Below are positions 10,556 through 50,947 of a DNA stretch of 64,000 nucleotides, in pieces. The DNA is taken from assembly GCA_965637545.1 (NCBI GenBank), contig OZ281496.1, forward strand, positions 6,882,001-6,946,000, read 5' to 3'. Source of the stretch: Phallusia mammillata (lineage: Eukaryota). Positions within the stretch are counted from its first letter, which is position 1. Each line of letters begins with the position of its first letter. A program made the translations under genes and the position numbers. Under the pieces are notes generated by a model. It did no database searches. It was given only the letters and a program-made list of their open reading frames with translations, and was not told where the DNA came from.

Positions 10556-10930
10556 CAGGGACGGGCAACTTCTCCAGTTGGCGGGCCTGATATGGGAAAA
10601 AGAAGTACTTGGCGGGCCGGATTCCTGAATCGATACATTAATCGCGTATTTATCCAGTGATTTAAAACCGATTTTTGACCACCTAAACCAAATACATTCA
10701 AGAACATCACAAATACAATACAGTCCAAACAATCTAACTGATGTAACATAAAATTATCCACCACAGCAAATTTAATTCATACACCACAGACTTGCTGAAA
10801 CACTAACTAGGCTACGCGTGTTGAAACAAAGGAATCCGTGAAAGCAGGCCACACACATGGTTGGCAGTTATGTCGTAACAATGGACTTATGGTTTAATGG
10901 TAACAACGGTGGGAAAGTTTTTACTATTGG

Positions 10931-11657
10931 TGTTACGGACAAATTCACAATATTTAAATGTGATTTTTATGCTTTCTTTCCCAAGTGCAACCATGCTTAA
11001 CGTCTATTCCCAAGTGCATTGTTCTTTGTTAGTTTTGGGCCAATCCTAACTTTTATATGCGGTCATGTGACTAAAACGTGCTTGGACTTAGCCACACCTT
11101 GTTCTAAAAGTGCAGTTTGTATGTTTTAGTGCAGTAATCTGTTAGAATCGACTTAGTTTAAATGTTTGTGTGTTAACCAAATGTCAGCAAGTTTACAAGT
11201 ATGTTAATGTATAGCCATGTGAAGTGTTTCTAGTAACTTTTCGTTTGTTATTGTTGTTTGAATGTTTAGACGATAAAGCCAACACCATAATGTCAAACAC
11301 CTAGGTACTGTGAACTTCAGAAATCTCAACTGCTCAAGTGCTTAACTGCTCAACTGCTCAACTGCTCAACTGCTCAACTGTCTCAATTTCCTCTATTCTG
11401 TATAGTCTTGACATCCACTGTGGCGCAATTCAGCTGTTTTGGATCTTGGATACGAACTGTATTTGTTGTCATTCGTGCACTGTTCTTGCACCTTCATCGC
11501 CATAATATAACACTGAAAACCACAGTTTGTGCAGTCTAGAGGGCAGTTGTGAATTACTGACTCATTGTACCTGATGATGGTACCAACGAAGGCATTAGCC
11601 TAGGTTTGCCTAAAGTGAGCTTAGGCCGTGACTAGTCCTAAAATTTTGGACGTCACA
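10931..11657 (+). repeat. 5' LTR (727 bp)
   Basis: TGTTACGGAC...GGACGTCACA; four AACTGCTC units. Confidence 0.97.
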
Positions 11658-11741
11658 TCATTTCTGAAGAAGCCAGACCCCTTTCTATTAAGAAAGGGTG
11701 TCTGAAATCTGCTGTCTGGCATTAGTGGTGTTGCAAATACA

Positions 11742-14700
11742 ATGCCTGGATCAAATTCTAGCACATCCTCTCATGAGGATGTGGACGGAGTGCTTCAAGA
11801 AAAGTTGCATTCCTTGAAATCATCTCGGAGTGGGCATTTGGGTGCTGTTACCAAAGCCGAAAATATTGTTTGTAACTTGATGCTAGATGTTTCTAATATC
11901 AAGGAAGTACCAGCTGCAAAGGAAGCTTTTGATAGTGCACTGACAAAGTGCTTGGACTGTTGCAAGGAATACCATTCTGTGATTCCAGATTCACTCTACT
12001 CTCAGAAACAAGAGGCAGTGGACAAGATCAAGTCCCTGGAGGAAAAAGGGGACAACATAAATTCTATGTATCAAACATTTCTACAAAATGCTGCTGTGGA
12101 GTTGGGTTCTACTGGTGGGCATTCGAAAAGCTCACATCACTCAACTGGGTCAAGATTGTCCTCTAAATCCAGTTCACATCGTTCTAGTAGAACAAGCTCA
12201 AGATCTTCACACCACTCACACCATTCCAAGGCTCCTAGTTTGAAATCATTCCACTCTTCTTCTTCAATATCAAGCAGAAGCACTACATACTCAATGAGGG
12301 AGGTGCGGCGTGCTCAGCTAGAAAACAAGCTGACAGAGTCAGAGGCACAATTAACTCTCCAAGCATCAGCTGATGCTGTTAATGATGCACTGATGAAAGC
12401 TGAGGAGATAAAACGTAAGGCCAGAGAAGACGAGGAGGCCTTAAAGATGATGCTTGAAGATGAAAAGGAAGAAAATGCCCAGCGAAGAAGGGCAGAAGAA
12501 GAGGCAAATGCCATGCGTAAAAGGGCAGAAGAAGAGGCCATAGCCAAAAGAAGAAGAGAAGAAGCTGATGCAGAGAAAAGGGCGATTAGAAGAAAAATGG
12601 AACAGGCTGCAGCTCGACGGAAAAGAGAAGAGGAAAGGGCTGAAGCAATTTTAGCCAAGGCAAAAATGGAACATCGACAAAAATCTTACAATGCACAGTT
12701 GAAAGTGCAGCGCAAGAGGCATGAGGTTGACCTGGTTGTACTTGAGGCTGAACCAGTGGGATCCTGTGATTCTCGTCATGAATACAGGTTGGATATGCCC
12801 CCACTAAATCAGATAGATGACGCCACGGTGGGAAGCTCTGCTTGTCTACAGCAGTCTGCCCATGACCTAGCTCCGATGGACTGTCCAATGCCTGGTGAAA
12901 TGCATACCATTTCTGGTTTCACCCCTCTAGCCACAGCAAAGCTGCCACAGCCTGAATATCCTGTCGCTCATCCAGCAGAACAGCTAAATGTTTCTGCCGA
13001 TCCATACTTGCCTGTATGTACACAGACTGACATAAAGCAGGAGACTCACAGTCCTTCTATGGGGCCGGTCTCCAAGTACAAACCTCAGCCAGATGAGAGC
13101 TTCACCAAAGATGACTTTCACTATGGAAAGGCCATGGTGGACTTGGTGGAGAGTACGAAAACCATGCTGCATGGCTTTACACTGCCCAAAAGGGGGCTCC
13201 CAAAGTTCTATGGGAATCCAATGAATTACCACAACTTTATGAAGAAATTTGATGAGATGATCACAAGGCATTTTCCTGATCCTGCTGTACAACTTCAGTA
13301 CCTTGTAGACATGTGTGAAGACAAAGCCTATGATGTTGTCCATGGATGTTGTGCCACGAGCCCACCTGAATTGGGTCTTGCTACTGCTCGGGAGTTGCTG
13401 AGAGATAACTTCGGGCGCATGGACTTGGTGGTAAATGCACATGTCAAAGAGTTGACCAAGGGTCCACCAATTAGGACTGGGGACAATGAAGGTCTTCGTT
13501 CTCTTGCTACAAGTATGACAAATGCTTTAATGGTTTTTCGATCTTTGGGTTGTGAGTCACAGTTGGACTATTCCCAATTCCTAGTGGACATATTTCAGCA
13601 ACTACCCAAGCACATGCAAAATACATTTGTCACAGAGGCCAGTTCACTCTACCGAAGGAATGGAAATGTGACATTCAGCAATCTGACATCGTACCTCAAC
13701 CAGAAGGTGATGGATTCCAACAACATGTTTGCGGATGCATTGACAACAGTTAAGGAAAGGGATCCAAAGAAGGACAAGCCCCAGAAGAAGAAAGAACATG
13801 CTGTGTTCTCTGCACAAACTACTTTGGGCTCCACATCATGTGAACATGTTGACAAACCTAAACCTCCAGATCAAACAAGGAAGAAGAAGCCACAACCATG
13901 TGTGGTTTGTAACAAACCTCATCCATTATGGGTATGTGATGAGTTCCAGAAAAAGAAACAGTTTGACCGTTGGACAACAGTCAAGAATAACAACTTATGC
14001 TTCAACTGCTTTTCACCAGACCACATGGCAAATGAGTGTGTCTGCTCCAGAAAGTGCAAGTCTTGTGAAAAACCACATCATACTCTACTTCATCGTGATG
14101 AACAGCGAAATATAGAAAAAACATCCACATCGACTGAGGAAAAGAAGAATGCTGAAAGTCCCAAGGAAAGCTCAACGACATATGTAGCCACTGTTACTAC
14201 ACCCCCTGCAGGAAGGGACAGGGTTAGACTCAAGGTGGTGCCAGTACATGTGTGGGGAAGGGATCTGAATCGTGTAGTGGAGACATATGCATTTCTGGAT
14301 GAGGGATCTGACACCACATTCTGCACGTCAAATCTGAAACAGAGACTCAAGCTTGAAGGAAAACAAGTTTCCAGAAGACTTAATGGCATAAGTGGCAGTA
14401 AGGATCTGCAGGGATACGAGGTCGGACTGTCCCTACAGGGGATTCAAGAAACAGATTCAATCCGTATTGAGAATGTACTGACGGTGGATGCTCTACCAAC
14501 ACTGAAGAACAGTATACCTACAATGGAAGATGTAAAGCATTATTCTCATCTGAGGGGATTGGACTTTCCAAAGTTACCTGATGCAGAAGTGGATATTCTC
14601 ATTGGGGCCGGTACGCAGGAAGCCCATTCTATCAGGGAAGTGCGAACCGGGAAGCCAAGACAGCCAACAGCTATTCACACTGGACTTGGGTGGACCTTAG

Positions 14701-17700
14701 TTGGCACTGATGCATCAGATGCATCAGAGGACAGTTGCAATGTTAACTTCGCCACAATTGGCAATAATGAACTACATGACATGTTCCAGAAGATGTATAA
14801 TCATGACTTTATGGATGACAAGTGTTCAAATGATGTCTCTCTATCTATGGAGGACAAAAGGGCACTCGCCATGATGAATTCGACTGTGCAAAGGAAAGGC
14901 AAGCATTATCAGCTTGCGCTACCATGGAAGAATAAAAATGTAAAGCTACCTTATAACCGTGGAACAGCCGAGAAACGCCTTCTTGGTTTAAAGAGACGAT
15001 TAAAGACAGATCAGTCACTGTTCCAGAAGTACAGTGAAAAGATTAATGACTCGCTGAAGAATGGTCATGCCAGGAAAGTACCAGATGGAAAGGATCCACA
15101 CCCGGGAAAGACTTGGTACATTCCACATCACTGCTGCACTGGTGGAAAGTTTCGGGTTGTGTTTGACTGCGCTGCCAAGTATGCAGGCACATCCCTCAAT
15201 GAAAATCTCTTACAAGGACCTGATTTGACCAACAACCTTGTTGGTGTTCTTCTTCGTTTTCGCCAGGAGAAGATTGCATTGATGGCTGACATTAAAGGAA
15301 TGTTCCATCAGGTTTTTGTGGACCCAGATGACTGTGATGCTCTGAGGTTTTTGTGGTGGCCAAATGATGACTTGTCCAAGCCACCTGAGGATTACCAGAT
15401 GCTGGTGCATCTTTTTGGGGCAACTTCTTCTCCAAGTTGTGCCAGCTTTGCATTGAGAAAGGTTGCTGAGGATAATGAGAGCAATGCAACAAAGGAAACA
15501 ACGGATACTGTCCTGCGGAATTTTTATGTAGATGATTGCCTGAAGTCGGTCAAGACTTTAGAGGAAGGTTCCCAGCTAGTCAAGGAACTGGATGAGCTAC
15601 TTAAGTGTGGAGGATTTCACCTTACCAAGTACCTGAGTAACAGCAAAGAACTGTTAATGTCTATTAATGAAGATAACCTTGCTCCATCAGTGAAAGACAT
15701 GGACTTGGATGGATTGCCAATCGAGAGAGCTTTGGGAGTGTACTGGAACACTGGTACGGACTGCTTCGAGGTCAAAGTGAAGTTGAAACCAAAGCCCTGC
15801 ACAAGACGTGGAATTCTGTCAACAATAAGTCAGTTGTTTGACCCCATGGGGTTTGTGCAACCCTTTATCTTGCCAATCAAAAAGCTTATGCAAGAATTAT
15901 GCAAAAGAAACATAGGATGGGATGAAGCTATTCCCACCGAGTTTGAGGTTGCCTGGAAAAAGTGGCTGGGCAATTTATCACTGCTGGAATCAATTACTAT
16001 TCCTAGATGCTTTAAAACAATGGACTACATAAGTGCTGAGCTCCATTGCTTTTGTGATGCAAGCGAAACTGGTTATGGAGCTGTTTGCTACCTTCGCCTG
16101 GTAACTGGTGGTTCCTACCACTGCTCATTTGTGATGGGAAAGTCCAGAGTTTCCCCTTCAAAGGCAGTTACCATTCCCCGGCTTGAACTCACTGCTGCAG
16201 TGGTTGGTGTTAAACTAGCGCAGTTTGTGATTCGTGAGTTGGATCTTGAGTTGGAAAAGGTTGTGTACTGGACAGACTCCACTTCTGTGCTTCAGTACAT
16301 CAGAAATACATCACGCCGCTTTCCGACGTTTGTTGCCAATAGGCTGGCTGTGATTCAAGCAGCCACAGAACCAGAACAGTGGAGACATGTGGATACAAAG
16401 CAAAATCCTGCAGACATTGCATCTAGGGGTTTTTATCCTGACCAGGTGGACAAGGCAAAGGCATGGTTATCCGGTCCATCATTTTTGTGGAAAGAAGAAA
16501 GTTGCTGGCCAGAACAGCCAGCTGTGTTACAATTGCCAGAAGACCATGAAGATGTTGAAGCCAACACAATTGTAGTAGAAATTGTGCAAAATGGTTTGGA
16601 CAACTTGCTAGACAGATACTCTTCATACAATGCTTTACTCAAGGCCACTGGTTGGTTGTTGCGGTTCAAGCAGTACATGATGTGTAAGTTTTCAGAGAAA
16701 TTACGCAAACCTGCACCCAAGGCAGGTCTGCTGACGGCAGAGGAAATGGAAACAGCTGTCCATCAAGTGGTGAAGCTGGTTCAGCATCAAGCATTCGGAT
16801 CTATGTCATCGGATCTTAAGGAATACCAGAGCTTTTCCCACTACTTGGAATCTCAGCATTCGAATGGATTACATATTCGAAACCGGGCTCTTGGTAGACT
16901 TAGCCCTATGAAAATAAATGGCACTATGAGAGTGGGAGGTCGCCTACAACATGCAACTCTGCCGGAGGACATGAAGCACCCTATGATCTTGCCTAGTCGT
17001 CACCATGTTACTGGGCTGATTATACATCATTACCATCAGCGAGAAGGACATAGTGGAACTCAACACGTTCTAGCAGCCACCCGTGAGAGGTACTGGATTC
17101 TCAAAGGCCAATCATCTGTTCGTCACTACTTGAAGGACTGCAGAAAATGTCGTTTTTGGAAAGCACAAGCTGGTAGGCAGTTGATGGCACCCTTGCCGGT
17201 TTGTCGTGTTGAGTCTGGACAGTTACCCTTTACTCATGCAGGGGTTGACTACTTTGGCCCTCTAATGGTAAAAATTGGACGCAGTCATGTGAAACGATAT
17301 GGCTGCATTTTTACTTGTATGGCTACAAGGGCTGTACATTTAGAGCTAGCTGGCTCACTGGACACTAGTTCATTCATACAGGCACTTCGTAGATTTGTGC
17401 TGAGAAGAGGATCTACCACTAAACACATATATAGTGACAATGGAACCAACTTCATTGGAGCTGACAGAGCACTCCGCGAAGGGATTAAAGCATGGAATCA
17501 ACAACAGATACATACAGAGCTACTACAAAAAGGAATTGAATGGCATTTCAATCCCCCAGCTGCCAGCCACCAAGGTGGTGTATGGGAGAGAATGATTCGC
17601 TCTGTGCGAAAAATTTTGCAGTCACTGACTGGAGACAAGATATTGTCTGAGGAATCTTTGAACACCTTCCTGATAGAAGTGGAATCGATCTTAAACAACA

Positions 17701-18119
17701 GACCACTGACACCTGTCAGTGATGATCCAAAGGATGGGTCTGCTTTGAAGCCCATTACTTTGTTAGCTGGTGGAATTGAAGCTACATTGCCACCTGGAGA
17801 ATTCATCAAAGCAGATGGCTACAAGAAATCCTGGCGGGCAGTCCAATGGTTGAGCGACCAGTTTTGGAAGCGCTGGGTGAAGGACTATTTGCCACTTCTG
17901 CAAAAACGCCAGAAGTGGTTGCAACCTGAGAAGAACTTTGAAGTTGGAGATGTTGTGTTGGTAATGGATGCCAATACAAAACGAGGAGTATGGCCCAAAG
18001 GACTGGTCGAGGAGGTCTTTCCAGATCATGACGGGATGGTGCGGAGAGTTCGAGTCAGAACTTATGACTCAACTTTGATGAGGGACATTCGAAAGCTGTG
18101 TTTACTTGAATGTGGCTAA
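11742..18119 (+). CDS. Bel/Pao Gag-Pol polyprotein, 2125 aa (Gag with Zn knuckles, aspartic protease, RT, RNase H, integrase)
   Basis: CFNCFSPDHMANEC...CEKPHHTLLH; AFLDEGSDTT; DIKGMFHQV and YVDD; FCDASETGYGAV, WTDS, NPADIASRG; H-H/C-C zinc motif, GVDYFGP, SDNGTNF, GGVWER; C-terminal VGDVVLV...WPKGLV. Order PR-RT-RH-IN. Confidence 0.97.
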   Translation: MPGSNSSTSSHEDVDGVLQEKLHSLKSSRSGHLGAVTKAENIVCNLMLDVSNIKEVPAAKEAFDSALTKCLDCCKEYHSVIPDSLYSQKQEAVDKIKSLEEKGDNINSMYQTFLQNAAVELGSTGGHSKSSHHSTGSRLSSKSSSHRSSRTSSRSSHHSHHSKAPSLKSFHSSSSISSRSTTYSMREVRRAQLENKLTESEAQLTLQASADAVNDALMKAEEIKRKAREDEEALKMMLEDEKEENAQRRRAEEEANAMRKRAEEEAIAKRRREEADAEKRAIRRKMEQAAARRKREEERAEAILAKAKMEHRQKSYNAQLKVQRKRHEVDLVVLEAEPVGSCDSRHEYRLDMPPLNQIDDATVGSSACLQQSAHDLAPMDCPMPGEMHTISGFTPLATAKLPQPEYPVAHPAEQLNVSADPYLPVCTQTDIKQETHSPSMGPVSKYKPQPDESFTKDDFHYGKAMVDLVESTKTMLHGFTLPKRGLPKFYGNPMNYHNFMKKFDEMITRHFPDPAVQLQYLVDMCEDKAYDVVHGCCATSPPELGLATARELLRDNFGRMDLVVNAHVKELTKGPPIRTGDNEGLRSLATSMTNALMVFRSLGCESQLDYSQFLVDIFQQLPKHMQNTFVTEASSLYRRNGNVTFSNLTSYLNQKVMDSNNMFADALTTVKERDPKKDKPQKKKEHAVFSAQTTLGSTSCEHVDKPKPPDQTRKKKPQPCVVCNKPHPLWVCDEFQKKKQFDRWTTVKNNNLCFNCFSPDHMANECVCSRKCKSCEKPHHTLLHRDEQRNIEKTSTSTEEKKNAESPKESSTTYVATVTTPPAGRDRVRLKVVPVHVWGRDLNRVVETYAFLDEGSDTTFCTSNLKQRLKLEGKQVSRRLNGISGSKDLQGYEVGLSLQGIQETDSIRIENVLTVDALPTLKNSIPTMEDVKHYSHLRGLDFPKLPDAEVDILIGAGTQEAHSIREVRTGKPRQPTAIHTGLGWTLVGTDASDASEDSCNVNFATIGNNELHDMFQKMYNHDFMDDKCSNDVSLSMEDKRALAMMNSTVQRKGKHYQLALPWKNKNVKLPYNRGTAEKRLLGLKRRLKTDQSLFQKYSEKINDSLKNGHARKVPDGKDPHPGKTWYIPHHCCTGGKFRVVFDCAAKYAGTSLNENLLQGPDLTNNLVGVLLRFRQEKIALMADIKGMFHQVFVDPDDCDALRFLWWPNDDLSKPPEDYQMLVHLFGATSSPSCASFALRKVAEDNESNATKETTDTVLRNFYVDDCLKSVKTLEEGSQLVKELDELLKCGGFHLTKYLSNSKELLMSINEDNLAPSVKDMDLDGLPIERALGVYWNTGTDCFEVKVKLKPKPCTRRGILSTISQLFDPMGFVQPFILPIKKLMQELCKRNIGWDEAIPTEFEVAWKKWLGNLSLLESITIPRCFKTMDYISAELHCFCDASETGYGAVCYLRLVTGGSYHCSFVMGKSRVSPSKAVTIPRLELTAAVVGVKLAQFVIRELDLELEKVVYWTDSTSVLQYIRNTSRRFPTFVANRLAVIQAATEPEQWRHVDTKQNPADIASRGFYPDQVDKAKAWLSGPSFLWKEESCWPEQPAVLQLPEDHEDVEANTIVVEIVQNGLDNLLDRYSSYNALLKATGWLLRFKQYMMCKFSEKLRKPAPKAGLLTAEEMETAVHQVVKLVQHQAFGSMSSDLKEYQSFSHYLESQHSNGLHIRNRALGRLSPMKINGTMRVGGRLQHATLPEDMKHPMILPSRHHVTGLIIHHYHQREGHSGTQHVLAATRERYWILKGQSSVRHYLKDCRKCRFWKAQAGRQLMAPLPVCRVESGQLPFTHAGVDYFGPLMVKIGRSHVKRYGCIFTCMATRAVHLELAGSLDTSSFIQALRRFVLRRGSTTKHIYSDNGTNFIGADRALREGIKAWNQQQIHTELLQKGIEWHFNPPAASHQGGVWERMIRSVRKILQSLTGDKILSEESLNTFLIEVESILNNRPLTPVSDDPKDGSALKPITLLAGGIEATLPPGEFIKADGYKKSWRAVQWLSDQFWKRWVKDYLPLLQKRQKWLQPEKNFEVGDVVLVMDANTKRGVWPKGLVEEVFPDHDGMVRRVRVRTYDSTLMRDIRKLCLLECG

Positions 18120-18718
18120 ATTTCTACTTTCTGTGCATGCTCTTTCATATTTGTAACCTTTTCATTCTTCATTACACCAACATATATGCCTCTTCACATG
18201 TCATTCTTGCTAAGTCTGTACTACCTATATGTCTTTCATCTTGCCTTATAGCCTTATCATGCATGTTAGTGTTGTGTAGTGTGTTCTTCATAAATTGTAA
18301 ACATTCCGAATACCTCTTCAACTAAACATTGTAATGTCTGTACTGATAACAACCAAGTATTGTGAAAGTGTTTTGTTTTCTAAGCCTTTCTGTGTTTTTT
18401 ACCTTGCCAAAATCTGTCATTGTTTTTTACCTCCTAGAACAATATTTGGTGCAAAATTTGTAGTTAATTGTGAAGCATTTGAAACTGTGCATTTGATACT
18501 ATTCTTGTCAGTATGTAACATATTCACTCAGTCATAGTTGTGTCTTTGTTTTGTTTTTAAGCCCAGGATGGAAATGTTTGTGTGGGTACTTTGGTTTGGG
18601 TCAGTTACCAAATTTGTAATCACAGCTCTCTCTGTGACCAACCTTCCTGTGCCTTGTTCTTTGTCCGTTTTTGTTTTGAAAAATGTTTCCATGCTGTCTG
18701 ACATTTTTGGGGCCGGAA

Positions 18719-19437
18719 TGTTACGGACAAATTCACAATATTTAAATGTGATTTTTATGCTTTCTTTCCCAAGTGCAACCATGCTTAACGTCTATTCCCA
18801 AGTGCATTGTTCTTTGTTAGTTTTGGGCCAATCCTAACTTTTATATGCGGTCATGTGACTAAAACGTGCTTGGACTTAGCCACACCTTGTTCTAAAAGTG
18901 CAGTTTGTATGTTTTAGTGCAGTAATCTGTTAGAATCGACTTAGTTTAAATGTTTGTGTGTTAACCAAATGTCAGCAAGTTTACAAGTATGTTAATGTAT
19001 AGCCATGTGAAGTGTTTCTAGTAACTTTTCGTTTGTTATTGTTGTTTGAATGTTTAGACGATAAAGCCAACACCATAATGTCAAACACCTAGGTACTGTG
19101 AACTTCAGAAATCTCAACTGCTCAAGTGCTTAACTGCTCAACTGCTCAACTGCTCAACTGTCTCAATTTCCTCTATTCTGTATAGTCTTGACATCCACTG
19201 TGGCGCAATTCAGCTGTTTTGGATCTTGGATACGAACTGTATTTGTTGTCATTCGTGCACTGTTCTTGCACCTTCATCGCCATAATATAACACTGAAAAC
19301 CACAGTTTGTGCAGTCTAGAGGGCAGTTGTGAATTACTGACTCATTGTACCTGATGATGGTACCAACGAAGGCATTAGCCTAGGTTTGCCTAAAGTGAGC
19401 TTAGGCCGTGACTAGTCCTAAAATTTTGGACGTCACA
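18719..19437 (+). repeat. 3' LTR (719 bp)
   Basis: By eye identical to the 5' LTR except three rather than four AACTGCTC units. Confidence 0.97.
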
Positions 19438-19654
19438 ATTGGGGAGCGTTACTGTCCGTTACAACTGTAATTTGACGCAGTAAGCATATAGGGGGAATTA
19501 CGGCAGACTGTGGCCGCGGGCCACATTATCATGTAAGACCTGAAGCTGAAACTGTCTGCGGGCCGCTCAAAATCCCGTCGCGGGCCGGATCCGGCCCGCG
19601 GGCCGTATGTTGCCCGTCCCTGATCTAGAGGGTATTTTGGGTGCGACAGCATCT

Positions 19655-36800: not shown

Positions 36801-38097
36801 AAGCTTGTGCCTTCAGTGGAAAATAAGGCTTAGCAAAAAGTTTATTGCATAAATGTTAGGCCTTTGTTTGATTCTGTAAACAATATAATGCGTTAGATCA
36901 ATGTCTTCATAAAAAAATACTTTTAATGTTAAGCTCTTCATTTCTTTTGGCAGTTTAAAAGCCGTAAGTGTATTCACGGAATAGTTATTATAAACTTAAG
37001 ACGTTTTTGCGTTTAAACCAACATGTTTGTTTATAACCAATTATAATTAGTTTCCTAACAATCTGAAACAAGGCGTCATGTACACCCGGGAGAAATCTCT
37101 GTGACGTAAACATTACCAAATTAGTCTACAAAACGTTGTGATTCAAATGAACGTGTCACTATTTTTGTGTAATTATTCAATCTTCTGCTGGTGCTTTACA
37201 TGCAATCGCCCGTTCTTGCGTTCGCATACCTACGATATAGTACTTATACGTTCCCGTTTTCGTTACGAAAAGAGAACGCGTTCTTCTCGGGACAGTCGTC
37301 CAGTGTGAATGCTGGGCTGATTGCACAGTGTTGTTTCCCGGAGAGTTGTACGGTTGTTGGATTTAGTTACTTTGAGCTGAGTGCCAGATTGCAGTTGTTT
37401 TGGCAGTTGAATGTTTTAGCCTTGTGTCTTGTGTGTCATAAAATTTACTTGGTGGAACTAGGTCATGTTTATAGATTGATTTTGCATTAGTTGGTTTGGT
37501 ATAGTTTCGGAGTCTTGTTATCGGACACATACAAAACACTATGTTTGGTACTGTACGAACTATTTTGCCGTTTTCGTCCGGTATAAGTTACAAACGTAAT
37601 CGGACACGCAGGAAAAGGAAGTTGTTGCACAGCTGACTGCCACATCGCGAAGCCAGTTAATGCCAGTTAGTTTATACCTTTAGGATTAGGCCGATTTTTG
37701 GTTTCGAAAAAACTTATTTTGCGCCGCACAGCAGGTTTGTCAAGTCATTTTGCTTAACGCCTAATCTGTGTATTGGGATTCAGTTTGAATTTACTTGATA
37801 TTGTTACATAGTGCTTCGTATTTTGGTCATTACTTCGTGGAAAGGAATATGCAGTACATTTATGGAATTTGTAGTATTACGTGAATATATTTTTGCCTCT
37901 ACGTTCTTGAGCGTAACAAGTTTGTTCAGTTAGATTTGTGACAAACGATTTTAAAGATAGGATTCGGATGTTCTAAACATATGAGCGCCAAACATAAAAA
38001 ATTTTGTTCCTGGTATCTTGTTTTAGCTGAAAACACAGTAGTCGCAAGTAAGACAAAACATTTTTTTATAATACCTAAAGAATAAACTTAAAAAAAT

Positions 38098-38788
38098 ATG
38101 TCATCTCCGGATTTGGTCTCAGAGCAAAGTGACATTTGTGATCAAAGGCTTATTGAAGGTGGAAAAGTAAAACGACATATGCTGAAACACAGCAATGAGA
38201 AACTTCAGCGATGTGATGTTTGTGAAAAAACTTTTGACCGAAGTAAAAATTTAGAAACATATGTTGACTCACACTAAGGAGAAATCACATCGATGTGATG
38301 TTTGTGAAAAATGTTTTGCTCGATGTGGAGATTTGAAAACACACATGTTGACCCACACTAAAGAGAAACCACATCGATGTGATGTTTGCGAAAAAAACTT
38401 CAGTTTCATTTCCAATTTGAAACAACACTTGTTAACCCACACCCAAGAGAAACCTCATCGATGTGATGTTTGTGAAAAATGGTTTGCTCGATGTGGAGAT
38501 TTAAAAAGACACATGTTAACCCACACCCAAGAGAACCCTCATCGATGTGATGTTTGTGAAAAAAACTTTAGATCAATTTCCAATTTAAAAACACACATGT
38601 TGACCCACACAAAAGAGAAACCTCATCGATGTGATGTTTGTGAAAAAGGGTTTGCTCGTATGGGATGTTTAAAAAGACACATGTTGACCCACACTAAAGA
38701 GAAACCACATCGATGTGATGTTTGTCGAAAGAGTTTCAGTGACATTTCAAATTTGAAAAGACACATGTTGACTCACAACAAAAGGTAA
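38098..38788 (+). pseudogene. C2H2 zinc-finger gene 1; about 7 fingers, frameshifted near 38258
   Basis: ATG 38098 (MSSPDLVSEQSDICDQRL...) is homologous to the other ZNF starts. A 2-nt loss in gaaaca(ca)tatg shifts the frame; ORF 38261-38788 holds six CxxC...HxxxH fingers with TKEKPH linkers. Confidence 0.85.
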
Positions 38789-39429
38789 CTTTATCTGTGT
38801 GAAGGTTAGTTGAAATTGCTTTATTTTGTATGGATTTTCTTTCTAAACAGTTTTTGAAAAACATGTACCACACAAAGTAACAATAAAAACGGTGATTCTG
38901 CGTACATTTAACGTTGTTCACCAAACCATTTAAATCTACTGTAGTTTAAGTTCGGCGCCAGTCGATGGGATATTCGACTCCTTTACATTAGTAATTTTTT
39001 CAAAATATTACAAAAAACACTTTGATCCGATTACGCTATGTTTTACTTGATGAACTCGGTTAAAAATGTTTTGTTAAAATCAATAACGACGAAATATTAC
39101 CTTGTTTATTTTTACTGACACAAATAAAACTCGAGTTTGTTTACACACCCGGGTAAGCTTCAGCATTGTGTATGTTTTCGTTTAATATTGTTTTGAATTT
39201 CAATTGGGCGAAAAAGTGATATTTTACTTGTATTGAACAACAATCAACACGTTGATGTACGTTACCTTTGGTTTAGAATTTGTAACACGTTGAGTCAGCA
39301 GGTCGCAGTCGTTTATAGTATTACATATAAGTTATGTTAAATTTTATATCGTATGATGATGATTCAGTGGTTATGAAAATATTGAAAGTGTTGAGTGTTT
39401 AATAGTTTAATCAAATCAACTCTAGAAAA

Positions 39430-39720
39430 AAATTGTTGCACAGTTTGCAAGCCGGTGCATTGTTCAGAAAACATTACAATGCTCCAACGAATCTGTATGT
39501 TACGTTTGCAAACTTTCGGTAAACAGACCACACAATCGGTAAACATGCGACTGATTATATTCGTTAACTTAGGAAGGTGAGGCAAAGTGACAAAAGCACG
39601 CTCTTTGGACTGAATCTTTTTCCGTGCAACCTTAGTTTTTCGGTCACTGATAATGCAGTTCGGGTAGCCGTTTAACTGCAGGGCCTCGTGTACCCTTCGC
39701 AATTCAGTTTTACTGCCCAT
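39430..39720 (-). mobile_element. Penelope-like RT C-terminal/linker remnant
   Basis: TELRRVHEALQLNGYPNCII...AFVTLPHLPKLT. Confidence 0.75.
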
Positions 39721-39899
39721 AACATGCTACCGTCCATAATTACACTATTAACTTTTCTGGTGCCAAGGTATTGACGAGGGAAAGGCGCCCGTTCGCTGAT
39801 CTGTCCGGCACTTTGATATACAAAGGCTTTGGTTTAAACCGTGGTAGGACTTCAACCGTATGTGCTGGTTAGTTTCTAGACTGGATGTGCTGGTTGGTT

Positions 39900-40240
39900 T
39901 CTAGACAAAAACGAGCATATTTTATCCTTGGATACAGAAATTTCGAGACTCCTGGACGGCACACTTTTGTTAAGCGTGCATCACAAACGAACCAGTATTA
40001 CAAGGCACCTACAGTTTAAAATGAGTATAAAAACAGATGTTCTAATGCCGATTAGCTATAGGTCGCATTTACAACACTTAACTAGGAATTTTATCCACGT
40101 TTTATCAACGTATTATCGCCGTTTTCGCGCCAGTGTCTTTTTATGTTTACTCGCGGGGTGCTATAAGAACGACTGTTTGGGTAGCTCACGTTACCCTGGT
40201 GTAGACCCCCGTATAAGCGGTCGAAACACCGTATGACTTG
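39900..40240 (+). mobile_element. Internally deleted Penelope-like remnant (RT fragment, GIY-YIG end, pseudo-LTR)
   Basis: LDTEISRLLDGTLLLSVHHKRTSITRHLQF is fused to KTDVLMPISYRS, which matches the end of the 10215 and 43030 copies. Confidence 0.75.
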
Positions 40241-40352
40241 TTCACATTTGCCAGGCAAAAGAAAAGTCTATCTTTTTTCAGCTCACAACGTACCAATCGC
40301 AGATCAGCATAACGATTTTTTTATAACACCTGAATAACTAATTTAAAGAGAG

Positions 40353-41129
40353 ATGACATCAACGGATTTGGGCGTGGATGAAGCTGATATTTGTGATCAG
40401 AGGTTTTTGGAAGGTGGAAATGTAAAACGACATATGCTGAAACACAGCATTGAGAAACTTCAGCGATGTGATGTTTGTGAAAAAACTTTTACCCAGAGTT
40501 CGACTTTAAAAAGACACATGTTGACTCACACCAAAGAAAAACCTTATCAGTGTACTGTTTGTGGAAACACATTTATTCGGCTTGGAATATTGAAACAACA
40601 CATGGTGACACACACCAATGAGAAACCTCATCGGTGTGACGTTTGTGAAAAACGGTTTGCGCGTAAAGATGTTTTGAAAAAACACATGTTGGTTCACATA
40701 GATGAGAAGCCTTATCGATGTGATCTTTGTGATACTGGATTTACACAGAGTGGAAATTTAAAAAGACACTTGTTGACTCACACTAACGAAAAACCTTATC
40801 GATGTGTTGTTTGTGAAAAGAGATTCAGGATTAATTCAAATTTGAAAACACACATGTTGACCCACACTAAAGAGAAACCTTTTCGATGTGATGTTTGTGA
40901 AAAAGGGTTTGCTCGTAGTGGAGATTTGAAACAACACATGTTGATTCACACTAATGAGAGACGATATCGATGTGATACTTGTGGTAAAAAAATCACTCAA
41001 CATGGAAATTTGAAGACACACATGTTGATTCACACTAAAAAGAAACCTCATCGATGCGATGTTTGTTACAAAACATTTACCCACTCTGGAAATTTGAAAA
41101 GACACATGTTGACTCACCAGAAAGTGTAA
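40353..41129 (+). CDS. C2H2 zinc-finger protein 2 (258 aa, 8 intact fingers, no effector domain)
   Basis: Uninterrupted ORF of tandem CxxC-x12-HxxxH units with TKEKPY/H linkers. Confidence 0.92.
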   Translation: MTSTDLGVDEADICDQRFLEGGNVKRHMLKHSIEKLQRCDVCEKTFTQSSTLKRHMLTHTKEKPYQCTVCGNTFIRLGILKQHMVTHTNEKPHRCDVCEKRFARKDVLKKHMLVHIDEKPYRCDLCDTGFTQSGNLKRHLLTHTNEKPYRCVVCEKRFRINSNLKTHMLTHTKEKPFRCDVCEKGFARSGDLKQHMLIHTNERRYRCDTCGKKITQHGNLKTHMLIHTKKKPHRCDVCYKTFTHSGNLKRHMLTHQKV

Positions 41130-42884
41130 CTTTACCGGTGTGATGTTCATAAAAATGTTTACTTGGGCTAAAACATTGCCTTTTTGTGCGGATTTTGTTT
41201 CCTAACAAGAAACATGTATCTCACAGAGCAACAATAATAAAGGTCACCCTATGTACAGTTAACGTTGTTCACCAAACCATTCAAATCTTGCATAAATTAT
41301 GTGGGAAATTTGGCAGCTGTCAATGAAATATCCGATTGCTTTAAATTAGGAATGCCTTTACAATATTACAAAAAAAATTCTCGTTTGGTGCTGTTTTGTA
41401 TTTTCAGTGGTCGTATTTCAAAATGACTTTTTACTGGGATTGAACAACAATAAACACGTTGTACATAATGTACATTACTTTCAAAATTTTTATAATATTA
41501 TAGGCGTTGAATGTTTAACAGTTTAAACCAATTAACTCTAGTTTGACATTGGGTAAAATGTTTAAACAGACAAACCTAAATAGAAAATTCAAGATTAAAT
41601 TGAAACACATTGGTATCAGAAAATTCTGGGATGAACAGTGAGAAGCTTTTAGGACATGGTCTCCAATGAAGCAAGTTCTTGTCGCTTCATACGCCTTCGG
41701 TTTATGGCAAGTTAAAGAATCGGTATGAGGTGTTGACTAATTTCTGTTCAATTCTTTTCAAAAGCGTTTTTGTTGGATTTTATGGAACCTGCCCAAGCTC
41801 GTAAAAAACGTTAAAATAATAAAATTACTATGTGAAATTAGTAATGGTCTGGACTATAGTATAAATAGACTATATTAAAAAACTGTAACGTAGTCAGACA
41901 CGTACATAAATATTGAACAACATAACCTTTTACAAATGGTTATCACTAGTTACTGCTTGGGTTTGTATAATTAGGGACTGAAAGATATAAGTGTGTGCAA
42001 TAAAAAAAAACTGTTTAAACATGATGCTAAAATTTTTTCCTCATGTTCGTTTTCGCAACAATATTAGTTTGATCAAATTAATATCTGACCGACAAAACGC
42101 ATTGACAATATGCTTGGTGGTCTATCCTTACCCTGTTACCCCTTTATTTTGCACTTCGATTGTCGGCGAGCACCTTAGTTTTCTAAATAAAATGCTCGAC
42201 GTCATTTTAGCTCACATAACAGTTTAGGGCTATAAATCATTAAATGTGTATTGTTATATAATTTCAAACCAAAATCGCTTTATATCACGTGGTTTTGTAC
42301 ATTGGTAATCATACAGGATTTTATTGGATGTTATTTCTTAGATTGGTGGAATGCTTATCATACATTCATGCGTTTATACCAAATAGTCCCCTGTGCTGAG
42401 TAGCATGCTGTAACACTGGCTAATTAAGCGCATTAAATTGAATTGTCGAACACAATAGATAATCATCATTTATTTTTGCCAACGAACCATGAACCACAGG
42501 TTCAAGCTGCTTGACACGCGAAAAAATGCACGGTAGTCAAACTCTCGCTTATTTCTGTGCGGCGATATGAGCGCCCGAAATCTGTTTAGCGCAAAACAAA
42601 ACAGGAAAAATAAAGCAAGCTAACTTTTTGTAGGTCTGAGTGCAACGTTTGTGCCTTTTTGGGTCCCATTTCGATACTGTTATCTAATTACGAACCCCCT
42701 TTGAGCTTTAATTATTTTTGTGCTTTTAATAGTTTAATTGATTATAATCAATCTCGTTATGCGCCAATTAACAAGTTGTCGCGGGACCCTTGATCTAAAC
42801 TTCAAGCTCCACACCTATTTCCTGGCTCAGTGCAAGCAAAATGCATCATTGGTAAAAAACGAGCTCAAAAATAAACTGTGGCCA

Positions 42885-43680
42885 AGAAGAAGCAAAAAAA
42901 TCGGCATTAGCAAAACATGCTACATAACGTTTCTGCTGTCAAGGTGTTAGCGAGTGAAACTGACTTCCACAAGCGAGGTTTTCTAGAGTCGCGGAACATA
43001 CATTTTCACACTAACACGATAAACGTTAAAACGGACGTTCTAATGCCGATTACTTATCAGTCGGTTTTGCACCATTGAGCTCAGTGTTATGTGATTATCA
43101 CTCGGCCATTGCGTTTTTACCACCGCGTTTGTGTGTGTTGTGCCGCCCTTGTCGTTATATAACACATTTGAGTTTTCAATTTTTGTCATTACCGTGATGA
43201 AGATGTCTCGTATTGGACTTTGAAGTGTCGGCATATTAAAATAAAAACTGCAGGAATAGCCAAAAATGTGTAAAACAATTGTGTATATCCCAACAACTTG
43301 TTTCAGTGAATATAGTGTTACTACCAGCACTAGGCACATTGCAAACACGTTTCTTTGAACATCCGGCTTCACCAAGATAATGTCTGCTATCCGATGCAGT
43401 CTTTAGCACCCCGAGAGTAAACACCAGAAAGACGTTGGCTCAAAAACGTATATAAAAACCTTTGTTCACCAGTTCCAAGCGACTGATAGCTAATTGACTT
43501 TAGAACATCAGTTGTTACGTTAATCTACGATTTTGACCCACGTTTTTATCTTCGTTTTCGCGCCAGTGTCTTCCTCATGTTCACTCTCGGGTTGTTATAA
43601 CAGCGACTGTGTTGGGAAGCTGACATTACCCTGATGTAGAGACAGCGCGTATATGACGTTGAAAGGTCGGATCAATTGCT
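42885..43680 (+). mobile_element. Penelope-like remnants: GIY-YIG C-terminus (+), an inverted pseudo-LTR piece (~43330-43430, -), and a pseudo-LTR (+)
   Basis: KKSALAKHAT...VLASETDFHKRGFLESRNIH...KTDVLMPITYQSVLHH*. 43500-43680 is homologous to 40060-40240. Confidence 0.78.
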
Positions 43681-43790
43681 TACATTTGTTAGATGAACAA
43701 AAAAGTCTATCTTGTTTCATCTTATAACACATAAGTCGTAAAACAGCATAAACATTTTTTATTTATAAAAACTGAATAATTTAAAGAGAG

Positions 43791-44495
43791 ATGAAATCAA
43801 CGGTTTTGGGCTTGGAATAAACTGATATGTGTAATCAAAGGTTTTTGGAAGGAGGAAACGTAAAACGACATATGCCGAAACACAGCATTGAGAAACTTCA
43901 GCGATGTGATGTTTGTGAAAAAACTTTCACCCAGAGTTGGATTTTAAAAAGACACATGCTGACTCACACTAACGCGAAACCGCATCGATGTGATACATGT
44001 GATAAAAGATTTGCCCAAAGTGGTGATTTGACAAGACATATGTTGACCCATACCAAAGAGAAACCTTATGGATGTGATTTTTGTAATAAAAGATTTACAC
44101 ACTGTGGAAATATGAAAAGACACATTTTGATTCACACTAAAGAGAAACGTCATCGATGTGATGTTTGTGAAAAAAAGTTTGCTCATGGTGGACATTTGAA
44201 AAAACACATGTTGATTCATTCAAACGAGAAACCTTATGGATGTGATGTTTGTGATAAAGGATTTACACAGCATGGAAATTTAAAAACACACATGCTAATT
44301 CATACTAAAGAGAAATCTCATCGATGTGATGTTTGTGAGAAACGGTTTGCTCGTGGTATAGATTTGAAAAGACATATGTTGACTCACACTAAAGAAAAAC
44401 CTTATCAATGTGATGTTTGTAAGAAACGGTTTGCTCGTGGTAGTACTTTGAAAAGACACATATTGATTCATACTAAAGAGAACCCTCATAGATAA
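43791..44495 (+). CDS. C2H2 zinc-finger gene 3 (7 intact fingers; possibly a pseudogene)
   Basis: The homologous ATG at 43791 is followed by TAA at 43818-20; ORF 43827-44495 is open; the 8th finger is broken by TAA; the upstream acceptor reads AT instead of AG. Confidence 0.8.
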
Positions 44496-45084
44496 GATGT
44501 TTGTGTGAAAAAGTTTGCTTATAGTGGAGATTTGAAAATTAACCACTAAAGAGAAGCTCCATTTAAGTATTGCGATTTGTTGTCATTTAACGTTGAACAA
44601 ACGCCATTTGAATCCACTGCAAATTATGTGAACATTAGGTGCCAGTCTATGGGATATTATGAGATACTTCCTATAGCTCTACGTCTTCATCTGTTTCCAA
44701 TCATTGGATCCGCAGCGAAATTTACATCTCGTAAGTGTTGCACAGCGAACCTTTTAGCAAACATGACTTAAAAATTGAGGTGCATCGTGTTGTTTGATGA
44801 AGGGATAAAATCTACAAATTTTCGTCTGTTTAAACAATAAGTATGAGATAGTTCACTTTGTGTTTGAGCTTTCCTATATTGCAATGGATGAATTGTCAGC
44901 ATTCAGTCAAAGTACTTGCCAAGTTTCGTATCCAATTGCATTGTAAGATAACAGTTGCACAAGTGTTTGTTCGATGAATCTTAAAAAAGTTGTTGAGATA
45001 CAAATAATTGAAGACAATTACCTAAAAACAAGCGTGTGGACGTTGAATTTCTTACTTTGCAGCAAATATAAATACTTCACCATG

Positions 45085-45800
45085 GTTTCGTTAGTGCGCT
45101 AAAGACAGGATTGCAAGGCCGTCGTTGTTTTTAAGATTTGTCCTTTTTTGAAGGCTTCAGAAATGGCCTTAACCACTTACCACTCATTTCCCTAAATCAC
45201 GTCTTTATTGTAGTTAGGTTTACTGTGACATAATAGCTTCTGGCGGTGGATGGATTCTCGCACCCACTATCAACGATAATGATTTAGGTTTGGATGAAAG
45301 TTATACTAATTTGTGGTTTGTTACGTCGTCAAAAAACAACAAAAATGTTATGGGTGAAAAAGATTATTTTCTCCACTCGAAAATTGTTCTTACGTGGTTT
45401 TTCAATTCCAGATTACATGTTTGTTATCAGCGATCGTTTAAAGCTTTTTAATGCAGCACCATGTAAAGTTAATTGACATTAAACCAAATATTTTCAGTGT
45501 TTTATCCCGATGTAAATTCGACGTTGGATCGACTTAATGCAAAATCAACAGAAATTATAACCCAGGCAAAAATTATCTACCCTTTACGCTCGGCCGTTGG
45601 CCTCTTGTGCACTGAACGGCAGCCCCTAACTTTTCCCATTCATATAAGTCAAGTTTTTCGATGGCATTTCCATACCTGGTCCTGACTTGGCATAATCATA
45701 CACCGCCCTCGTCTGATTAATTATTAATGGCGGTTTGGTGCAAAGGATTATGGTACAAAAAGACAAGCATGGCCATGTCACAATTTTGTACGGCGTCGTA
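45085..45800 (+). pseudogene. Intelectin-like exon remnants plus the VFYP exon
   Basis: QDCKAV (~45107); tag/VYCDIIASGGGWILAPTINDNDL (45218-45290), close to intelectin [45 protein letters not shown] (~45497). Confidence 0.7.
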
Positions 45801-47719
45801 GATGTTGCTTGTAAACACTACAGTTTTCATTGATTCGATGCACGTCACATAAAGACAGAAGTTTGACTATTAGGAAAAAAAAGTACTAATCTCTATTGGA
45901 ATAACATAACATATTGGCTAGTTTGTAATTAAATAATTGCTTAAAGAATGAATTTCATATTACATAAAGCTAGGTGTTGAATTGAATGGATGGTTTGCAT
46001 AAACGTAAAAAAGTTTTTGTTTTGACGTTCCGTCGACACTTATTACGAAATCGCGTGAATAGTGCCGAACTGTTAATGCAATTTTTAAAGATTTATTTAT
46101 CAACCAATTGTTCAGCTAAGGGCGTTATGTTTTGGCCGTAAGTGACGCACCCCGCTGGTAGCTACAAAGGCCGACCATCGCACAGTTTTGAGACGTCGAT
46201 CAATCATGCCTTTGAAGTTTTGCTCTCCCTTTTCGCGCCACAGTGCAACTTTCGAACAAAGGCGCGTTTAAGCTCAAGCAGTGCTATTGGCCAATCGACG
46301 AAAAAGGAACTTAGTTCAGTGGTATGACTTAGCTCTGTGAACACATTGTGTTAAAGTGAAAGTTAAGTTGTTGAGGCAGCATGCAGCTTTTCAGTTAAGT
46401 CTAGTTTTCGGAATAAACTTCAGGAATATACTTTATTTTGCCTAATCGAACTGCAACATGTTGCTGGACGTCAACTTATTTATGCATGAAAAGGTAAGCA
46501 CTTGTTGTCCTATAGATTTCGTTGTATCTTTATTTGTACCATAAAAATGTTTTGTAAAATCGATTATATCTATTTTACTTTTTGTTTAGATATCTTCATG
46601 GGGCGCACGTCAAACTCAGTTCAGCGGGGAAAGTAAAGATGTGAACGATTGACATTTTCCTAAAACCTTCATTAACACAACAAGGTGCAACCGCTCGTCT
46701 TTAGACAATTTGACGACTGCAGCGCTGCAAAATCGAATATTGTGCGTCGACTTTGAGTAACAGTATTTCGTACGTTTAATGTTGATGATTTTTCCTTTTC
46801 CGTTCGTATTTGTGGCAATAAAATTAAGATAAAAGCAATATGTGAGTCATAGTCCGTACTCATCCGGAAAGCCGATAGAAAAACTAGCAAGGTGGGTGTC
46901 CGGGGCATGTTAGGCAAAGTGTGGCGTAACGACGCAATAAGCTAGGGACTGTCAGGCATGGACCAGGCGAGGGTACCGTTGTATGGCCGTTGGCACGGGA
47001 CGTACATTGACCAAACATAATCCTGACGTACGCCCCATGCATGGGGGTGTTTCAATGTCAACCCTTAGCCATACATTCATATAAGGTTGAGACACGGTTG
47101 TCATGTCCGACCCAGACATGGTTGCACCAGTAAGCCATACGTATTTGGACACGGCCCGGTCATACATTTTTGCTTGGGAAGTTTACTCTCTGATTTCTAT
47201 CCTTTCGTCTATGGCACCCACCCTTCCAGGCTGCAGGATGGCAATTTGTTTGGAAACGATTACAGAATTGGAGTAAGTTGATTAAACGTTGATGATTTTG
47301 TTGAACAATTAACAAAGTGCGTAATGTACTGTAGATCTACTTTAACCCAAATCAAAATTGTTATCCATACGATTATGAATCAAACTGTCGAAAAAAGTAA
47401 TGTTAACGTTCGCAGCATTACGAACACTTTGATCTACACGCGGAATTAATGGGTTTAACGGCACGTGTTAACATAAAAACACTTTCGGCCTAAAACAAAA
47501 CGAAAACCGTAACCGAAATTGACATGGATGTGATATATTTTTATTTTCCAAATAATATTTTGTGACAGTTTATAATCGTATCAACAGCGTTGTAAGCTTT
47601 TTTTAATTTTAGCTGATAGCAAATTGCATATTTTATTTTGCCGTTCACGTGGTGTAATGCTAAACCAAATGCTAGTTGTTTTATTAAGAACTTGTATTTT
47701 TGCCAACGTTTCGCTCACC

Positions 47720-49040
47720 AGACCGGTCACCGTAGCAGCTGAATGAGTGTGTAACATCACGCCGCGTAGTTGATACCTAAATTGGAATTCAAAGCACAGG
47801 CTAAGTATACGCTGCTAAACGTTAATTGATTGACTGCATGCTCTGAGTCAAACTAGTCAATAGCTTACTGTAACACAAACTCGTACAAACGTCGGAGATC
47901 GCACCTACACAACTAATTTCTGTCTACATTATTTTGTGTACGCGCAACAACTGGTCATAGTAAGCCAGATTAAACGTCAGCTAAGAAATTTCACTTGCAG
48001 ATATAAGGCCGATGCTAGGCTTAGAAAACATTATAATGTAACGCAAAGGTCTCTTATATCTGTGAATTTGTTAAAACAAAGTATAATTAAATCCCTGTAG
48101 TGGGATTCCATCGCATGTTAGATTTTTCTGGTCTGCTCCTTGTGCAAATTTAAGCGAGATTGACAGATATTGCAATTAATGTCTTACAGTATTTCGTTTG
48201 ATTATGTTTCTTGATGGTAATATTTCCTAAAATTCAATTGTTTCAAAGTTTGCCTTAATTTCTATGTGGAAAATTTCTGAATTTCTTTTCCTTTATGCTG
48301 AACAATGTCGCATCATCAGTGTTTTAAAATATGGTATAGCTTGAAGCAGTTTTTCTTTGCGTTGTAAATATACTTAAGATTCGTGGTTCCGCTCGTAAGA
48401 ACATATCCTAGAAGCAACACTTTTCAACACTTAACTTTTAAATAAACACTAACAACCCTTAATTTTTCTGCATTAATAAAAGGCAAATGAACCCCGGCTG
48501 AGGATTCTCTGGTACTCCGATTTGTACACTTCTCGTCAGCAGTTTGGTGATGACGAGTAAATGACTTTTTCGTAACACACAAAGCAAAAACGTTTGAAAA
48601 TTAATTTTGCATAATATAAAAACGAATAAATGTAATCAAATAGTTAACATTTGGAAAAACAACTTGTAAACTACTTGTTGGCTTGCATCACGCAATTTGA
48701 GGTGTTAACTGACACTTTGTGCAATTTCGTTTCCCTATTCAGAAAAACGCTTCGTCCCACTGTTGTGTACAACCACATGCAAAGTGTTCACACGCGTCAC
48801 TGTAGCTGAATGAGTGTGTAACATCACGCATAGTTGACACCTAAATTGTCATTCAAAAACCAGTCAAAGCATACGCTGCCAACCGTTCTATTGGAAAAAA
48901 ACGCCACATATACCATTCGTCCCTGACTGCATGCATGCCCTTGGTCAAACTAGCTAATTGCTTCCTGTAATACAAAAAAGTGAAAACGTCGGAGGTCACA
49001 GCTGCATAACTGATTACTGTCTAAATTAGTTTGTGAACGC
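47720..49040 (+). repeat. Diverged ~280-bp direct repeat (~47720-48000 and ~48795-49040)
   Basis: Shared gtcac.gtagc.gaatgagtgtgtaacatcacgc...cctaaattg...tacgctg...gtcaaactag...acgtcggag. Confidence 0.75.
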
Positions 49041-50671: not shown

Positions 50672-50947
50672 TAGTGGTTCCCAACCTTTTTTGCTACATT
50701 CCTCCCTTTGCCCATTTTCGAACTATCCATTCCTCCCCATAAGACGAAAAACAAATATAACTTAAAAAATTATAACAATTTGAAATAGACCTTATAGCTA
50801 GGGATGTCCATTTCAGAATCCTTTACAACTAGTTTCAAATTTAAACCGGGTCCAAATTATAATGGACATAATAATGTATTAAAAAAACACTTCCCCTGAA
50901 CTCATTTCTTCCCTTTGGAGGAATTCCTCCCCGGTTGGGAGCCGCTG
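50672..50947. mobile_element. hAT MITE (276 bp)
   Basis: TIR TAGTGGTTCCCAACC...GGTTGGGAGCCGCTG; TSD TACTAGTT/TACTAGCT (7/8). Confidence 0.82.

Follow-up and report, generated by a model that had tools for sequence, protein, structure and literature searches.

The window analysed here comprises 64,000 nucleotides of the genome of Phallusia mammillata (assembly GCA_965637545.1, contig OZ281496.1, positions 6,882,001 to 6,946,000 of the forward strand), and all positions below are counted from its first letter unless another coordinate is named. It contains a young, intact long terminal repeat (LTR) retrotransposon of the Bel/Pao superfamily, in which the position of the primer-binding site (PBS), just after the 5' LTR, is complementary to a stretch of the element's own LTR and has no TGG-type site for a transfer RNA (tRNA). 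The features of the element are described first, followed by the complementarity, its occurrence in related elements, and the priming mode that it suggests.

Anatomy and classification of the element

All features of the element lie on the plus strand. It is flanked by an identical 5-nt target-site duplication, ATTGG, at 10926..10930 and 19438..19442, and is bounded by a 5' LTR of 727 bp (10931..11657) and a 3' LTR of 719 bp (18719..19437), which form a direct repeat and both have TG..CA ends. No mismatch was found between the two LTRs, and their sole difference is one 8-nt CTCAACTG unit that is extra in the 5' LTR; because the LTRs are without any mismatch, the insertion is considered very recent. 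A single gag-pol open reading frame (ORF) of 2125 aa (11742..18119) encodes a DUF1759 gag, reverse transcriptase, a Pao peptidase_A17 family region, an integrase H2C2 domain, and DUF5641. Pfam matches of the ORF were PF05380 (3e-51), PF18701, PF03564, and PF17921, with RVT_1 marginally below the cut-off. By its protein domains the element belongs to Bel/Pao (Belpaoviridae), and the LTR size (within the 0.2-1.2 kb of the group), TG..CA ends, and short ATTGG duplication also fit; the superfamily assignment made in the original prediction, which had been drawn from the letters of this DNA, is borne out by these domains. In its protein domains, the structure of its LTRs, and the 5-bp length of its target duplication the element agrees with classical Bel/Pao elements, as described by the International Committee on Taxonomy of Viruses (ICTV) and as seen in the olive fly element Achilles. 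The element is not a member of the Tf1/sushi clade, which has a Ty3/gypsy pol, usually with a chromodomain integrase: both the domains and the closest proteins are those of Bel/Pao polyproteins of marine invertebrates.

Outside this genome the closest proteins are ascidian (Clavelina, 61%; Styela, 54%). Within the 240 Mb genome, at least five further places carry a pol region that is 99-100% identical and in open frames, and many more Bel/Pao families are present at 51-58% identity. A polypurine tract-like sequence, GGGGCCGGAA, which is not purely purine, lies immediately 5' of the 3' LTR (18709..18718). In all relatives examined, GGGGCCGG followed by 0-3 bases (mostly A/T, then A) was found immediately 5' of the 3' LTR; this plus-strand primer site is strikingly conserved, being kept in loci L092-L102 and L107-L134, from tunicates, echinoderms, hemichordates, a brachiopod, a mollusc, and a coral, and the variant at the polypurine tract-like site of the Styela2 element is GGCCGGGAA.

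Complementarity at the primer-binding position

The sequence following the 5' LTR reads TC ATTTCTGAAG AAGCC and contains no TGG. The first two bases form a spacer between LTR and PBS (TC, 11658..11659), and the putative PBS, ATTTCTGAAG (11660..11669), is the exact reverse complement of a candidate primer sequence, CTTCAGAAAT, at 11315..11324 (LTR position 385-394 of 727); the 3' LTR carries its own copy of this 10-mer at 19103-19112. The letters and coordinates first reported for both 10-mers, and the lack of TGG, were all confirmed in the sequence. The resulting 10-bp helix can be extended at neither end, the flanking pairs being A.A and C.C. In LTR elements the 3' end of the minus-strand primer fixes the boundary of U5 (the unique 5' region), and about 2 bases between LTR and PBS are trimmed by integrase; the primer of this element must therefore anneal from 11660 onward. 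Immediately 3' of the primer sequence lie 8-nt CTCAACTG-like tandem repeats of variable copy number (11325..11380). In an LTR copy at C2:788017-789232 the 8-nt-repeat stretch has grown to more than 20 units of 32 nt, and C/A-rich short repeats are also present 3' of the primer site in the Styela2, Haliotis, and Diadema elements. The sole poly(A)-signal-like hexamer 3' of the primer site in the LTR is AATATA, a candidate poly(A) signal at 11504..11509.

The chance of a match this long, at offsets of 0-8 nt from the LTR, was p = 0.002 relative to decoy sites in the element interior and p = 0.008 relative to dinucleotide shuffles of the LTR. An energy-based duplex score was also tried as a test statistic and was dropped as not discriminating; the length of the exact match was used instead. 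The signal is a perfect contiguous Watson-Crick match at the exact PBS position, not stability.

Both 10-mers were intact in eight copies of the family. A copy from a diverged subfamily (87% identical) carries C11315T in both of its own LTRs and in a third LTR, together with G11669A in its PBS, so that the two substitutions compensate each other. In another old copy, a lone T-to-C change in the PBS breaks one pair.

When the RNA was folded from the primer sequence onward, the 10-bp helix of this element was predicted in both the minimum free energy (MFE) and the centroid fold, with a mean pair probability of 0.94 and a leader z of -2.9. Among the nine leaders with a positive match in the survey described below, the primer-PBS helix was part of the MFE structure in six, with a pair probability of approximately 0.9. 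A terminal stem-loop of U5 (GTGAC..GTCC / GGAC GTCAC), which ends 1 nt before the LTR edge, was predicted at 11628..11656 in the MFE and centroid folds, and copies of the family differ only in its loop; a stem-loop formed by the last LTR bases and abutting the PBS was predicted in 7/9 positive elements. The hairpin that had been noted directly after the PBS was recovered and grows to 11674..11704 in the predicted fold, with CCCTTTCT/AGAAAGGG as its core, and a hairpin after the PBS was also predicted in most positive relatives.

A tRNA that might serve as primer was sought in two ways. A genome-wide search with the reverse complement of 11658-11674 gave exact matches in copies of this element only, and no tRNA gene was present at the 20 one- or two-mismatch loci that were read, twelve further two-mismatch places being left out. 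The site was also compared with the tRNA-Lys, -Glu, -Asp, and -Ser genes of this genome. The scan for tRNA complements that had been proposed with the original prediction covered these 20 near-matches and the four tRNA types. A tRNA family search gave some 35,000 first-look candidates genome-wide, and scoring with RF00005 was confined to a large tandem tRNA-Lys/tRNA-Glu array. This array, at C1:30.95-31.02 Mb (loci L061-L090), consists of head-to-tail alternating tRNA-Lys(TTT) and tRNA-Glu(CTC, some TTC) genes with a period of about 324 nt.

According to the ICTV, members of the Belpaoviridae are tRNA-primed and have an 18-nt PBS for the 3' end of tRNA-Arg or tRNA-Gly (PMC8742986), and Achilles has a PBS for tRNA-Tyr (PMC4580426). 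No such 18-nt tRNA site was found here, as there is no TGG after the LTR and no tRNA gene at the near-matches read. An 18-nt tRNA PBS is a descriptive and not a classifying feature, and membership in Bel/Pao by protein phylogeny stands. Unlike the classical Bel/Pao elements and the arachnid controls described below, neither this element nor its tunicate clade has a tRNA-type site.

Matched pairs in related elements

Relatives were analyzed with a preset procedure, in which the LTR pair was identified by alignment, TG..CA ends and the target duplication were checked, and the longest exact reverse complement (length k) was determined between the LTR and the 45 nt after the LTR at offsets 0-8. 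Twenty elements with cleanly defined LTRs were used, comprising 13 that included the element of this window (winA) and 7 metagenome contigs; among the other Bel/Pao families of this genome, the survey took in famB (L091). Loci L114, L116, and L135 (ambiguous or very diverged LTR ends), L132 (repeat extending into the coding region), and contigs with a 3' LTR cut by the contig end were left out. Two collapsed contigs, L137 and L165, have 12-nt matches directly after an ...ACA motif; their LTR ends were inferred, and hence they were not counted. A 13-nt mismatch-tolerant window score was weaker than exact length for 10-mers, and it uncovered the Haliotis match at offset 6.

Within the set of 13, matches were found for winA (primer CTTCAGAAAT, 10 nt, offset 2), famB, a second family of the same genome with 56% pol identity (CCGTTTTAAA, 10 nt, offset 3), Clavelina (TTTTGTAGAAAT, 12 nt, offset 2), Styela1 (TATTTGTAAT, 10 nt, offset 2), Styela2 (TTTAGCAAC, 9 nt, offset 3), the ENA contig L094 (TGCAGATAT, 9 nt, offset 4), Diadema (AATTGCGAAC, 10 nt, offset 3), Lingula (AATGTTTCAC, 10 nt, offset 2), and Haliotis (GGTTTTTCAAC, 11 nt, offset 6). 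The Lytechinus element has an 8-nt match that is not significant (CCAATTGC, offset 7), and Glandiceps, Ptychodera, and Oculina have no significant match (6-7 nt). The metagenome contigs included two positives (L125, 12 nt; L134, 10 nt), two marginal cases (L107 and L120, 8 nt each), and three negatives (L111, L127, and L161). A perfect match of 10-12 nt was thus present in 9/20 elements, and k was at least 9 in 11/20. The spacer between LTR and PBS is 2-3 nt in most positive relatives.

Matches with k of at least 10 occurred in 7/13 matched pairs versus 2/156 mismatched PBS/LTR pairs (Fisher p = 8e-8). One of the two mismatched hits was the Lytechinus PBS on the Diadema LTR, a cross match that arises because both elements have the same PBS. 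Fisher's combined p with the discovery case excluded was 2e-10. Control matches in the direct, reversed, and complement-only orientations were at most 8 nt long, except for one 11-mer in an AT-rich Styela LTR. That non-specific match, together with the shortness of the original one (just 10 nt, with a composition-aware p of approximately 0.008 for this element alone), could be taken to mean that the complementarity is a chance match in AT-rich, repeat-rich DNA. This reading is effectively refuted by the matched versus mismatched tests and the orientation controls, and we hold it to be very improbable: k was at least 10 in 9/20 independent elements against the 2/156 mismatched pairs, compensatory changes are present, and enrichment is found only in the reverse-complement orientation. 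Once relatives are counted, the match is beyond chance. Two pseudoscorpion Bel/Pao elements subjected to the same analysis as controls gave a self match of only 6 nt and have GC-rich tRNA-type sites, one beginning with TGG and the other with a degenerate TTG, which we take to resemble complements of the 3' ends of tRNA-Arg and tRNA-Phe.

The conserved complementarity in relatives that had been put forward as a test of the original prediction was found, with covariation and with different letters in each family. Across the 11 elements with k of at least 9, two to four Watson-Crick pair types are present at every helix position but one. The invariant position is the second from the primer 3' end, which is always A-T, and the primers end in ..AT, ..AC, or ..AA. 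Between winA and the sister family in Clavelina, the last six primer bases are common and three other helix positions have changed on both sides. In a quick protein tree with 13 rows, all of which were kept, the tunicate elements group in a single clade, in which all six are positive, and positives are present in every major branch. Positive and negative elements are sisters in three places, namely Diadema with Lytechinus, Haliotis with Oculina, and Lingula with the hemichordates. The Lytechinus element has the same PBS as that of Diadema and a homologous LTR site interrupted by a 3-nt insertion, and some of the negatives may thus have an imperfect site and not a different one.

Several further features were observed in these relatives. 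The Oculina element (L100) and L111 have a common post-LTR site, GTTCGAATTTG, across hosts, and the sea urchin elements of Diadema and Lytechinus (L095 and L097) have another, GTTCGCAATT; these cross-host sites may have been inherited from one ancestor or may be matched to a conserved partner RNA. A short (C)GTGA motif lies approximately 17-45 nt 3' of the LTR end in L096, L098, L099, L100, L095, L097, and L102 and is not obvious in the element of this window. One pseudoscorpion locus (L103, GCA_030710605.1) has a 3399-aa gene model that covers at least two Bel/Pao elements, an 8.1-kb duplication, and an assembly gap; this model is an annotation fusion and not one protein. Elsewhere in the Phallusia window, 84-nt tandem repeats are present at 38000-52300 in four blocks of 6-8 units each with 60-76% identity, and these blocks are probably part of a repeat-containing gene or gene family.

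Proposed priming by the element's own RNA

It is probable (roughly 0.7 in our estimate) that this young and intact Bel/Pao element primes its minus-strand DNA with its own RNA and not with a host tRNA, in a manner similar to that of Tf1. Briefly, CUUCAGAAAU from the R (repeat) region of the LTR would fold back over about 335 nt and pair with the PBS 2 nt downstream of U5, the RNase H of the element would cut after the paired stretch, and the freed 3' end (...AAAU) would be extended through U5 and R, as in the fission-yeast element. Plus-strand strong-stop synthesis would then copy the primer, so that the PBS would be re-templated from the LTR in each cycle. In tRNA-primed elements the PBS is likewise copied from the primer during plus-strand strong-stop synthesis. 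Such copying would account for perfect matches within a fixed length of 9-12 nt that have no more than ordinary stability. Cleavage of the RNA, its action as a primer, and a primer location at or near the RNA 5' end are what we infer in this model.

Tf1 RNA binds to the PBS through its first 11 nt and is cut by RNase H between nt 11 and 12 (PMC7175516), and references listed in that paper indicate that a U5 stem-loop beside the PBS is required. Like Tf1 and Tf2 of Schizosaccharomyces pombe, the Tf1/sushi elements, and Tcn1, the element described here has no tRNA PBS and has a site close to their PBS of about 11 nt in being complementary to its own upstream RNA; a U5 stem-loop of the kind found in Tf1 is predicted beside its PBS. 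Unlike the Tf1 group, which are Ty3/gypsy chromoviruses, it has Bel/Pao pol and gag, and the helix encloses a long loop (335 nt). The primer of Tf1 is the very 5' end of the messenger RNA, whereas one low-depth contig here hints at an RNA start at or before 11300, and, unlike in Tf1, self-priming is proposed here from sequence. Self-priming has also been predicted from sequence in the TAR lineage of plant Ty1/copia elements (Houba, Osr-1), a superfamily that is otherwise tRNA-primed (PMC6317226). That case, too, is a prediction, and it concerns an unrelated pol lineage.

RNA evidence was taken from Logan contigs, for which the run kind is uncertain and in which the junctions of U3 (the unique 3' region) with R and of R with U5 merge. 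In three runs, contigs span the LTR and the junction from the interior to the 3' LTR and not the flank of this window, a coverage that fits transcription of other copies. Altogether, contigs of four runs cover the element, which we take to be transcribed, and these are without 32 nt of the 8-nt repeats (11344-11375). One low-depth contig, from a run guessed to be RNA, gives coverage from 11300 to 12504 and nothing over U3, and this start agrees better with GATAAAG at 11272-11278 than with a start at 11315. For the transcription start of about 11315 in the original prediction, this contig is the sole hint, and by it the RNA may reach farther upstream; it gives no support to a start downstream of 11324, which would have spoken against self-priming. 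TATAAG is present 31 nt upstream of the primer sequence in L094, and a reading of TATA and initiator motifs across elements was mixed.

Several of these results weigh against self-priming. The low-depth contig hints at an RNA whose start, at 11300 or earlier, would precede the 10-mer by 15 nt or more, famB has its one strong TATA box 73 nt upstream of the primer sequence, and a 5'-flapped primer would complicate the second strand transfer. The energy of the primer-PBS duplex is ordinary relative to decoys (p of approximately 0.6 in the discovery case), single-element p-values are modest (0.002-0.05) under a composition-aware null, and the comparison with tRNA genes covered Lys, Glu, Asp, and Ser only. 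No perfect match was found in about half of the relatives (Lytechinus, Glandiceps, Ptychodera, Oculina, L111, L127, and L161, with only 8 nt in L107 and L120).

Some of the same points could be accommodated by a long-range structural helix that closes the R-U5 leader and serves in packaging, dimerisation, or translation control, with a host RNA such as a tRNA fragment as the primer. Pairings between U5 and the leader do exist in retroviral and retrotransposon leaders, four tRNA types were covered in the comparison, half of the relatives are without a perfect match yet apparently active, and GTTCGAATTTG (Oculina, L111) and GTTCGCAATT (Diadema, Lytechinus) could mean a conserved host partner. 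However, the paired stretch fills the sole position for a minus-strand primer, 2-3 nt from the LTR edge, with no space for another PBS. Selection for stability would allow G.U pairs and mismatches and would give high stability, whereas the helices are perfect, 9-12 nt long, and of ordinary stability; perfection without stability is not the pattern expected from selection for a stable stem. Moreover, the AT-rich site differs from family to family, also between families of one genome, and does not resemble cytosolic tRNA, and no tRNA gene was present at the genomic near-matches read. A structural helix with a host primer is thus considered unlikely. In copia-type priming the primer is a half tRNA produced by internal cleavage of tRNA-Met. 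As in that system, the PBS here is without an initial TGG and the primer 3' end would be made by a cut; unlike in that system, which uses a fragment of a host tRNA, the sole complement that was found lies in the LTR of the element and is family-specific.

The complementarity might also serve another replication step, such as RNA cyclisation or an aid to strand transfer, with priming by another tRNA-independent route. The 10-mer, if it lies in R, would be present at both RNA ends, so that 5'-3' contacts are conceivable, and the transcription start of the element is not fixed by the contig data. No known strand-transfer step requires a helix between PBS and R, though, and the fixed spacing of 2-3 nt, like the A that is conserved at primer position -2, is in keeping with extension from a defined 3' end. 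This explanation is regarded as less probable still than the structural helix.

Self-priming has been documented for Tf1 and predicted for Tf1/sushi elements, Tcn1, and plant TAR elements (PMC7175516, PMC6317226). A full-text literature search, with incomplete coverage, found no description of it in Bel/Pao, and the main Bel/Pao survey and the Sinbad paper make no mention of priming; the original prediction is borne out on this point, and the ICTV states tRNA priming for the group. A priming mode established elsewhere is thus probably encountered here in a superfamily for which it had not been reported, its mechanism being read from sequence. A broader proposal, which we advance tentatively and consider rather less likely than not to hold in full, is that self-priming is ancestral and widespread in a large Bel/Pao lineage of marine invertebrates (tunicates, echinoderms, brachiopods, molluscs, and probably cnidarians), with a PBS re-templated in each cycle and a primer cut inside R that is not the capped 5' end. 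If so, a primer cut from inside R would be a variant not seen in Tf1, one in which the primer would have to be processed a second time ahead of plus-strand transfer. Copying of the PBS from the LTR is a prediction of the self-priming model that is open to direct test.

If self-priming holds, annotation pipelines that require a tRNA-type PBS would under-call or misjudge abundant, active elements of marine animals, and a perfect match of 9-12 nt between the post-LTR sequence and the LTR, with A at primer position -2, could be used as a search rule. Priming without tRNA would then occur in all three LTR-retrotransposon superfamilies, which would be relevant to the long-standing question, raised in PMC3601003, of self-priming in the earliest LTR elements.
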